Source: Podarcis filfolensis (lineage: Eukaryota). Taken from it: 64,000 nucleotides of DNA. Where the stretch lies: NCBI GenBank assembly GCA_964270895.1, contig OZ185440.1. One strand, written 5' to 3'. The notes beneath the pieces were generated by a model, which was not told where the DNA came from, searched no databases, and saw only the letters and a program-made list of their open reading frames with translations. Both the position numbers and the translations under genes were made by a program. This document shows, piece by piece, positions 58,601 through 61,600 of this stretch; the first letter of the stretch is position 1; every line of letters begins with the position of its first letter.

Positions 58601-61600
58601 AAATAAGACTTAAGAGCATGTTCTTAATAAGCTAATAATCCTAATAATGGGACACAGCTTCCCACACCACTCAGTTTGGCAGGCAGAGCAGAATGAAAAG
58701 TGCAGGAAGCAGTCAGAAGAAATGGGAACATCATTTTAAAAATGAGGACCCTGGTGTGCAGATTGTGTACTGGTCCTCATAGCCACATGCACACACCCAT
58801 CTACTGCGTGGACAGAAAATGGACCAACATGAAATGCTGTCACCATGAAATGCTGTGAGAAATACTTACATTGCATCTTATGGTGATGTTGCAAAATGAA
58901 TGCATGAGAATTCAGTGCAGAAGAGCTTTCATCTGACTCTATTAATAGAGGACTCCATCCCCCTAATGGGGCAAAGAAAGGATACAATTCCCACAGACAA
59001 AGAGAACAATGAAGTAAATGCAGACCAGCACACCAGGGTAGACTGGCCCTCCATAAGCCATTATGCCATTGTACATAACAGAAGTCCAGTCTTCCCCAGT
59101 CAGGACCTAGAAGTAGACGAGAGAGATATTAGCAGCAACAGGGTATCCTGAGCACAACCATTGCATGAGGCCTGGCTTCTCCAACCTGGTGCCCTCCAAA
59201 TATTGTTGGATATCTGGTCCCATCAATCCCAGCCAGCATGGCCAATGGTCAGGGGTGATGGGAGTTGTTGTCCAACAACATTTGGAGGACAACAGGTTGG
59301 GGAAGACTGCATTAGGTTCTCATCTGAGTTTGAAGACCTCTTCATTAAAGACCCTTTCTCAGGCCCCATTGTCCAAAAAGTCTATGCGTTCCCAAAGCTC
59401 AGACAATATCCCACAATTCACAGATTCCTATTTCCCCCATTGGTCACCCATTTTCTGCCAGAACTTAGTACAGAAGACAACAATTTTCACCTACAAAACC
59501 CTGCCCTTAAGCTGGCTTATTAAAAACCCCAAGTTGTACCTGAAAGACAGTGATGAGAGCCTGGGGGAAGTTATCAAAGGTGCTGCGCCGTATCACTGTA
59601 TCATCAAAGTCAAACCTCCCTCCAAAAAGTTGCATCCCTAATAGGGCAAAGATGGTCATGAAGAGGAAGAGGAGAGTGAGGAGGGAGATGATGGAGCGCA
59701 CCGAGTTCAGCAGAGATGCCACTAAGTTGTTCAGAGAGGTCCAATACCTAGAGAGGGACACCAACGTTATGTGCACACCTATGTGAAGATGCTAAGATAC
59801 TTTCAGATCCAGGAGCCAAGCTTTGAAGTGCAGCTTTCTAGCTAAAGACAGAGAATATAAATCATCCTAATGACTAACTAACTAAAACTAGTTATAATCT
59901 CATGGCTGCCATCTTGAATGTAGTTGAGCATATGCAGCCACATCCAATAGGGCAACAAATTCAATTTATTTATTTGCTTTTTCACCCGCTCTTCATCCAA
60001 GAAGTGATGCCAAGGTGGGGTATGCCAAAGACCAAACAAAGACTATAGCAGCTCAAATAAAGGCATTAAAACAATATAGCATCGATCTGTATACGAGGCA
60101 TACTGTTGGCTGTATTAAGTACAGCTGTTCAGTGTGCTCAGTTGCATTCGGCAGGGAGATTGCTATGCCTGGATGACTCCATCTTCTGTTCTGCCATCCA
60201 GTGGCGTAGCGTGGGTTGTCAGCACCCGGGGCAAGGCAAGTAATTTGCGCCCCTTAACCCGTGGATTTTAGCACTCGAGTGCGAGCGCGCCCCCCCCCCC
60301 AGATGTTGCCGCCGGTGCGGCCGGCCCCCCCTGCACCCCCCACGCTACGCCACTGGGGCTGGGGGCGAGCGAAGGAGCCAAAGACCCCCCAAAGGCTCAG
60401 CAGGAATTTATTAAATTTATTATTTGCGGAGCCCCCGCGGGCCGAGGCAGCCGAAGCCCCCTCCCCTCGGGCGCCTCCCCGCCCCCTCCTCTCCTTGGGC
60501 TGTAGGTGGAGCCCGCGCTCCGAGGCGCTCCAGATCCGGGCTTGGCGAGCGCCTCTCCTCCTCCCGGCCGGGTCCGGGGGCTTCCAGCCGAGCTCCGTCC
60601 TCGCCCCCCCTCCCCCGCGGCTGAGACTTGCGCTGAGAGCCGGAGCCAGCGGCGCCCCCTTCCGACGGGAGACCCTCGCCCGCCCGCCGGCTTCCTCTCG
60701 GAGGGTTTTGGGGAGGGCAGGGCGCGTCGAGGCCCCTCGGAGCTCTCCTCCCTCCCAGTCGGCAGAAGCAGCCGCCGCCTGTGGCTGGGCCGAGGGGATG
60801 GCGCCGGCGTCGGCATCGGGGTGCGGAGGCTGCCGGTGCCCGGCCAGGCGTCGGTGGCGGCGTCGGCGCTGCTGCAGCGGCTGCTCCTCCTGCGAGCAGT
60901 GAGTGGAGCGCAGCCGCAGCGGCAGGGGGGGGGGCGCGCTAGGGCGCAAGGCTGGCGGCGGCGGCGGGGAGCCCGGCGGAGGAAGGAACTTGTCCCTTCC
61001 CTCTGGACTCGCGCCCCCCCCAGATGTTGCGCCCGGTGCGGCCGGCACCCCTGGCACCCCCCACGCTACGCCACTGCTGCCATCTAATCTAGCTTGGTAC
61101 CTAACATGACTAGTTCCCAGGACTAGAGAAGCTATTTTCAAACATCATAGTTCATCCAAGGGAAAGTTTGACAAATCACTGCTCTCCACTACAGATACGT
61201 AGGCAGAGAACAGGTGGCAGATTTAATCAATTTGTTCAGCCTCACTCAGAGACACCAGGAGATGAAATCTCACATCCTCTTTTACTTTGTAGAGATGGAC
61301 TTGAAGCAGGTAGCCACACGGTGGTCACATGCACACCAAATATTTAAAGCACAGTGATACCACTTTAACAGTCATGGCTCCCCCCAAAGAATCCTGGGAA
61401 CTGCAGTTAAAGGTGCTGAGTTGTTAGGAGACCCCTTGCAGAACTAGTTCCCAGCACCCTTAACAAACTACAGCTCCCAGAATTTTGGGGGTGGGGTGGG
61501 GTAAGCCATGACTGTTAAAGTGCTATGGGAGTGCTTTAAATGTATGGTGCGGATGTGACCAACTCTATGGCCACCAAATGAATACAAAGGAGCTCTGCCA

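Follow-up and report, generated by a model that had tools for sequence, protein, structure and literature searches.

This study examined an insertion in a 64,000-nucleotide stretch of the genome of the lizard Podarcis filfolensis (contig OZ185440.1 of assembly GCA_964270895.1; hereafter the window). The insertion is an 878-bp composite (60199-61076) in an intron of the calcium channel gene CACNA1S, with three hAT-type ends and a single target-site duplication (TSD) around the whole. It consists of a complete miniature inverted-repeat transposable element (MITE), a CpG-rich passenger DNA (the cargo), and a second, partial copy of the right end of the MITE. The explanation we favour, with a probability of about 0.55, is that a non-autonomous hAT-type composite, either a macrotransposon or a transduction-type 'Pack-hAT', moved into the intron as a unit. 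Self-BLAST comparisons, shuffle tests, and tandem-repeat and Rfam scans were all confined to the window.

Anatomy of the composite and its MITE family

The 8-bp duplication CTGCCATC directly abuts the outer left end (60191-60198) and the outer right end (61077-61084) of the composite, and an 8/8 match at these fixed boundaries has a chance probability of about 1.5e-5. The 17-nt terminal repeat CAGTGGCGTAGCGTGGG occurs exactly five times in the window, compared with 0.04 occurrences expected from shuffled sequence, at 54146 and 60199 on the plus strand and at 54309, 60339, and 61060 on the minus strand. Three of these five belong to the composite, and all three are perfect. The first two of them bound the complete MITE (60199-60355, plus strand, 157 bp), with the left terminal repeat at 60199-60215 and the inner right terminal repeat at 60339-60355 matching at 17 of 17 positions. 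The first base of the cargo directly follows the last base of this intact inner terminus (60355|60356), and the cargo, also given on the plus strand, extends over 60356-61010. It is closed by the outer right end, a 'fractured' MITE at 61011-61076 (plus strand; terminal repeat at 61060-61076), which shows 92% identity between 61014-61076 and the inner right end (60293-60355), and 95% identity to a plain family member found elsewhere in the window. The left limit of the outer end is uncertain, lying within 61003-61013, and since homology may reach back to about 61003, the length of the cargo is given as 645-655 bp.

The plain family member is a 180-bp element at 54146-54325 (plus strand), which carries its own TSD, AACAGCCA, at 54138-54145 and 54326-54333, so that element and duplication together span 54138-54333. 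By self-BLAST, the complete MITE of the composite matches it from end to end, and the last 59-63 bp recur at 61014-61076. The complete MITE by itself has no TSD, its right-hand neighbour at 60356-60363 being GGGCTGGG. Nesting of this MITE within a longer element was considered and rejected, because it lacks a TSD of its own and its left end, which is also the outer left end, abuts the outer duplication. An initial annotation of this DNA had described one 8-bp TSD around 878 bp, a complete 157-bp MITE within it, a second copy of the right-hand part of the MITE, and a plain 180-bp relative with a separate TSD, and each element of this three-ended anatomy was recovered.

An assembly artefact would give a similar picture if reads of a plain MITE at this position had been joined, via the common right end, to reads of a MITE lying beside a CpG island elsewhere. 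Repeats of 60-160 bp with 92-100% identity can mislead short-read assemblers, and GC-rich DNA is poorly covered. However, there are no gaps or ambiguous bases (Ns) near the composite, the only N run in the window (143 bases, 4267-4409) being far removed, and 5 positions tell the two right ends apart. Furthermore, the matching duplications on unique flanks close the structure, whereas a chimera would not usually lead back into the intron it had left. An artefact of this kind is regarded as very improbable.

The assignment to the hAT superfamily, also made in the initial annotation, is supported by the 8-bp duplications of two independent insertions (CTGCCATC and AACAGCCA), and by a perfect 17-bp terminal repeat that starts with CAGTG, in agreement with the YARNG terminal motif of hAT elements given in PMC3014272. 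Neither duplication fits fully the target preference nTnnnnAn, but only two sites are available and the preference is not a defining one; according to a table in that paper, target-site preference varies by hAT family. From these sequence features the element is considered to be hAT-type and non-autonomous. A copy of an autonomous hAT partner was not found within the window, a scan of metagenomes with the 28-nt terminus gave 0 matches, a literature search with the terminal-repeat string gave none, and CAGTGGCGTAGCGTGGG matches none of the Anolis hAT terminal repeats in the tabulated passage of PMC3014272 with which it was compared.

The family has the usual characteristics of a MITE: its members are short and non-coding, have terminal repeats and TSDs, and are represented in the window by copies of 157 and 180 bp plus one right-end fragment. 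The two complete copies differ in that the plain member has two extra 22-bp tandem units, while the MITE of the composite has about 30 private bases. The 22-bp unit, ATTTGCGCCCCCTAACCCGTGG, includes a telomere-like CCCTAA and is present in 3.3 tandem copies in the plain member (54190-54261) and once in the composite (60244-60265). In their left halves the two copies differ at 1 of 70 bases (98.6% identity), and the right ends of the family share 92-96% identity. On the basis of this near identity of the left halves and the lack of CpG decay, the family is judged to be young and, hence, plausibly mobile. Between the inner and outer right ends of the composite, 5 of 63 positions differ, while each end differs from the plain member at 2-3 of 56. 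As they diverge more from one another than from the plain member, they look like the ends of two different MITE copies, rather than the products of a fresh duplication. They do, however, have in common a variant without TAA (…GCGCCCCCCCC-CAGATG), which the plain member does not carry.

Composition and content of the cargo

Measured over 60356-61010 (655 bp), the cargo has a GC content of 74% and 72 CpGs, with a CpG observed/expected (o/e) ratio of 0.80, compared to 0.24-0.27 for the intron around the composite. These values lie within the CpG-island limits of Gardiner-Garden and Takai-Jones (>500 bp, GC at least 55%, CpG o/e at least 0.65), which are criteria of sequence and do not imply promoter activity or methylation status. 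Self-BLAST found no further copy of the cargo within the window, and apart from a 9-bp doublet there was no tandem repeat in it. Ribosomal DNA or a small-RNA gene was rejected as its source, given that no meaningful Rfam match was obtained. These results agree with the description of the interior in the initial annotation as non-repetitive and very CpG-rich. The plus strand of the cargo carries a G-quadruplex-type motif, GGGTTTTGGGGAGGGCAGGG, at 60703-60722, and dense C-runs at 60458-60489, which on the minus strand are runs of G.

The interior had also been described as distinct from the MITE, and in same-strand local alignment the two were similar only at the null level. Matches to the opposite strand consisted of a 16-bp C-run match (reached by 2 of 300 shuffles) and a 30-bp match (reached by 18 of 300), and were too weak for the cargo to be regarded as an inverted MITE fragment. 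The 16-bp match is perfect, and lies between the centre of the complete MITE (60284-60299, AGCGCGCCCCCCCCCC) and the cargo (60925-60940, GGGGGGGGGGCGCGCT).

These comparisons bear on the possibility that a non-autonomous hAT family has amplified with the 878-bp unit as its standard form, and with an interior that either belongs to the transposon itself (for example, the 5' untranslated region (UTR) and first exon of an autonomous partner) or was captured long ago. Use of the inner end would then have yielded the 157-bp MITE as a short derivative, and the insertion into CACNA1S would be a routine one. Such a form could be converted to the short one by recombination between the inner and outer right ends. 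The MITE is itself unusually GC-rich (66-69%), with a CpG o/e of 0.74-0.83, and so resembles the interior, and runs of C and G abound in both. Against this, an additional perfect terminal repeat with 46 bp of subterminal sequence is an abnormal thing to find inside a standard element, the interior is without same-strand homology to the MITE, and the ATG-led peptide encoded in it is of low complexity, with no sign of a transposase N-terminus. A standard family form is considered quite unlikely.

The intact CpGs of the cargo had been taken to indicate either a recent event or an unmethylated state. The MITEs are as undecayed as the cargo (CpG o/e of 0.74 for the plain member and 0.83 for the copy in the composite), and comparison of the two left halves, and of the three right ends, shows no difference that is a CpG transition. 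That the family is young is thus enough to explain the intact CpGs; recency holds as an explanation, while the inference about methylation is not called for.

The cargo also contains a feature resembling a first exon (60798-60904, plus strand), consisting of an ATG, 33 codons plus 2 nt, and a GTGAGT donor at 60899-60904. The ATG at 60798 is the only one on the plus strand of the cargo and stands in a strong-Kozak context (GGGGATGGCG), and the GTGAGT at 60899 is likewise the only such hexamer on that strand. About 375 bp upstream of the ATG is an AT-rich block. From its sequence, the cargo looks like a promoter, 5' UTR, first exon, and the start of an intron, which extends the promoter- or 5'UTR-like character noted in the initial annotation by these two first-exon-like signs.

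Origin of the composite

Movement as a unit would have begun with a donor MITE copy next to a host gene, beside its CpG-island promoter and first exon. A further, incomplete right end would have come to close off the 650 bp on the right-hand side of this copy. It may already have been there as a fragment, in the manner of Ac and fractured Ac in maize, or have been added when replication or repair switched template. A hAT transposase provided in trans would then have used the left end together with the outer right end, bypassing the intact inner end, and the resulting 878-bp unit would have inserted into the CACNA1S intron, producing the duplication of CTGCCATC.

The arrangement corresponds to that of a macrotransposon or of end bypass: cargo that starts at an intact terminus, a second terminus in the same orientation that closes the structure, and a single TSD. 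It also resembles the Pack-TIR elements of Tan et al. (2021, PMC8277862), which were defined by flanks covering at least 10 bp of the termini and an internal sequence of 100-5000 bp; here there are 17-bp termini at both ends and an interior of about 650 bp that is not MITE sequence. The parental copy in that definition is unique, with at least 90% identity and 80-120% of the length, and has no transposon within 100 bp, a condition that the donor locus is not expected to satisfy if the cargo derives from DNA flanking a donor MITE. That the cargo is a copied flank, rather than random filler, fits the sequence better, since the junction lies exactly at the inner terminus, whereas a random internal switch point would fall there in about 1 of 157 cases, and in filler capture the switch points are usually inside the element (PMC8277862).

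The composite could, instead, have been built in place. A plain MITE, comprising the left end and the present outer right end, would have inserted into the intron, and a later break or excision would have been repaired from another MITE copy, with synthesis continuing past the right end of the donor copy into 650 bp of flanking DNA and then returning to the native right end, so that the composite as such never transposed. This variant of gap filling accommodates all the features observed, as it yields the same single TSD, the same three ends, and the same exact junction of terminus and flank. It explains without added assumptions both the partial outer end and the 5 of 63 differences between the right ends, as these would stem from different copies. 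Gap filling without transposition is, moreover, the origin of most single-copy animal Pack-TIRs (Tan et al., PMC8277862), and the C-run and GCGC motifs at the junction of cargo and outer end, together with the 16-bp inverted match, are possible microhomology. However, the parents of the elements studied by Tan et al. are biased towards nearby positions (57% within 15 kb; PMC8277862), and none was found here within -60 kb / +3 kb of the site; the family also looks young and mobile. It is for these last two reasons, the apparent mobility of the family and the lack of a nearby parent where gap filling is biased to neighbours, that movement as a unit is preferred, and assembly in place is regarded as unlikely.

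Several observations weigh against movement of a captured promoter and first exon. Assembly in place would account for the duplication just as well, and for end bypass one has to assume, in addition, that the donor had a partial right end 650 bp downstream. The initial proposal that transposase skipped the inner end and moved the composite agrees with the anatomy, but in-place repair gives the same TSD and three ends. The exon-like feature consists of one ATG and one donor hexamer in GC-rich DNA, where long open reading frames (ORFs) arise by chance, and the exon-side bases of its donor site (GCA) are poor. No match was found to a minus-strand frame of the cargo (218 amino acids) among 5.8 billion proteins, although the query is of low complexity and the species does not seem to be represented in that library, so that a blank result means little; nor did residues 174-213 of the ORF at 60261-60899 match a protein in a search for which only proteins of 117-373 amino acids were eligible. 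Neither a donor locus nor a second copy of the cargo is present within the window. Lastly, the 16-bp inverted match hints at a more complex, template-switching origin. The private central segment of the MITE also includes a 10-bp palindrome, CACTCGAGTG, at 60272-60281, next to the 16-bp match, which may have been left behind by template switching or by the resolution of a hairpin.

Host gene and relationship to known hAT captures

The host gene is CACNA1S, encoding CaV1.1, on the minus strand, and the composite lies between the exons for IIS2-S4 and IIS5, about 420 bp from one of these flanking exons and about 660 bp from the other. Three minus-strand ORFs of an L-type calcium channel were recognised around it: 61741-61956 (IIS2-S4), approximately 59507-59776 (IIS5-pore), and 57967-58161 (the end of IIS6). 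In searches of the PDB, the first matched residues 471-540 of rabbit CaV1.1 (2.4e-43), better than CaV1.2 or CaV1.3, and the third likewise placed rabbit CaV1.1 above CaV1.2 and CaV1.3. The insertion had been assigned to intron 11 of CACNA1S; the gene is upheld by the CaV1.1 matches, while the number follows human numbering, in which exon 11 encodes IIS4 (R528). The best Logan contig for the IIS5-exon ORF, SRR13336341_1115108, showed 93% protein and 80-84% DNA identity, including a conserved stretch of intron (contig L001:339-948 aligned to window positions 59754-58977). This contig, the nearest relative of the exon in a collection from which the species and its near kin seem to be absent, was inspected for an empty site, but it does not reach the insertion site: it extends only about 340 bp upstream of the exon-homologous match, and that part lacks homology to the intron.

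The first-exon-like feature is antisense to CACNA1S. The AT-rich block of the cargo contains, on the minus strand and hence in the sense orientation of the gene, two AATAAA hexamers (60407-60421), which are possible premature polyadenylation signals in the intron. The composite probably does nothing for its host; at most, its sequence would provide a potential antisense promoter and this pair of sense-strand AATAAA hexamers.

Capture of foreign DNA by hAT elements is already known in animals and in lizards, but the three-ended structure described here is unusually legible. Of the 370 animal Pack-TIRs, 208 were hAT elements, and both end bypass (transduction) and FoSTeST, the switching of replication forks followed by transposition that Tan et al. 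proposed for multicopy Pack-TIRs, are, like gap filling in place, published routes to a structure of this kind (PMC8277862). The same survey, the largest in animals, found none in anoCar2, the only lizard included, although end-bypass cases may escape its pipeline (PMC8277862). The closest animal parallel is Pack-hAT-N8_XT of Xenopus tropicalis, where the frog element hAT-N8_XT captured a 5' UTR, that of CAPSL, and then amplified (PMC8277862). Like the lizard composite, it is of the non-autonomous hAT type, with both termini, an 8-bp TSD, and a few hundred bp of GC-rich, 5'-end-like cargo that is not transposon sequence. Unlike the animal Pack-TIRs, the cargo in the lizard follows a complete element with an intact inner terminus, giving three ends, and this points to end bypass or transduction.

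The composite also resembles the macrotransposons of maize Ac and fractured Ac (fAc) and the Composite Insertions that arise there from alternative transposition. These belong to the same superfamily, and in them a complete element is combined with host DNA and a directly oriented fractured end to make a unit that has one 5' and one 3' terminus as its borders and is competent for transposition (Zhang, Zuo & Peterson 2014, PMC4270019; Huang & Dooner 2008 as cited there). The maize units are kb to tens of kb in size, were caught arising, and have known donors, whereas the lizard composite is only 0.9 kb and based on a MITE. The history of the lizard composite is read from sequence.

Among lizards, the hobo_AC and hAT-N elements of Anolis carolinensis (Novick et al. 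2011, PMC3014272) offer the nearest comparison, having 8-bp TSDs and YARNG termini. According to that study, Anolis hAT families take up extraneous DNA, and their diversity is attributed to captured DNA and recombination between elements, with variants that were then amplified. Their filler frequently consists of other transposons rather than of a CpG island, and no intact inner terminus is mentioned. The two candidate mechanisms for the composite, use of a substitute downstream end and template-switching repair, are both represented among Drosophila P elements, as end bypass and gap-repair filler, in the summary given in PMC8277862, although these cases, as summarised there, concern a different superfamily and were experimentally induced.

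As a single locus without its donor, the composite is a well-formed and unsurprising addition to the known behaviour of hAT elements. If its cargo is a host promoter and first exon, it would be a clean vertebrate case of end-bypass capture by a cut-and-paste transposon. A broader suggestion, which we advance tentatively and hold to be doubtful, is that a young, mobile hAT MITE family lands beside CpG-island promoters and repeatedly carries off promoter and first exon by way of a downstream end. Were this so, different copies would hold the 5' ends of different genes, amplification would follow for some of the composites, and introns throughout the genome would receive potential promoters, start codons, and splice donors. 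An undecayed CpG island that is mobile and includes an ATG and a splice donor is able to give rise to new promoters, antisense transcripts, or chimeric first exons, and if many elements prove to hold different 5' ends, the family would represent a natural promoter- and exon-shuffling system.

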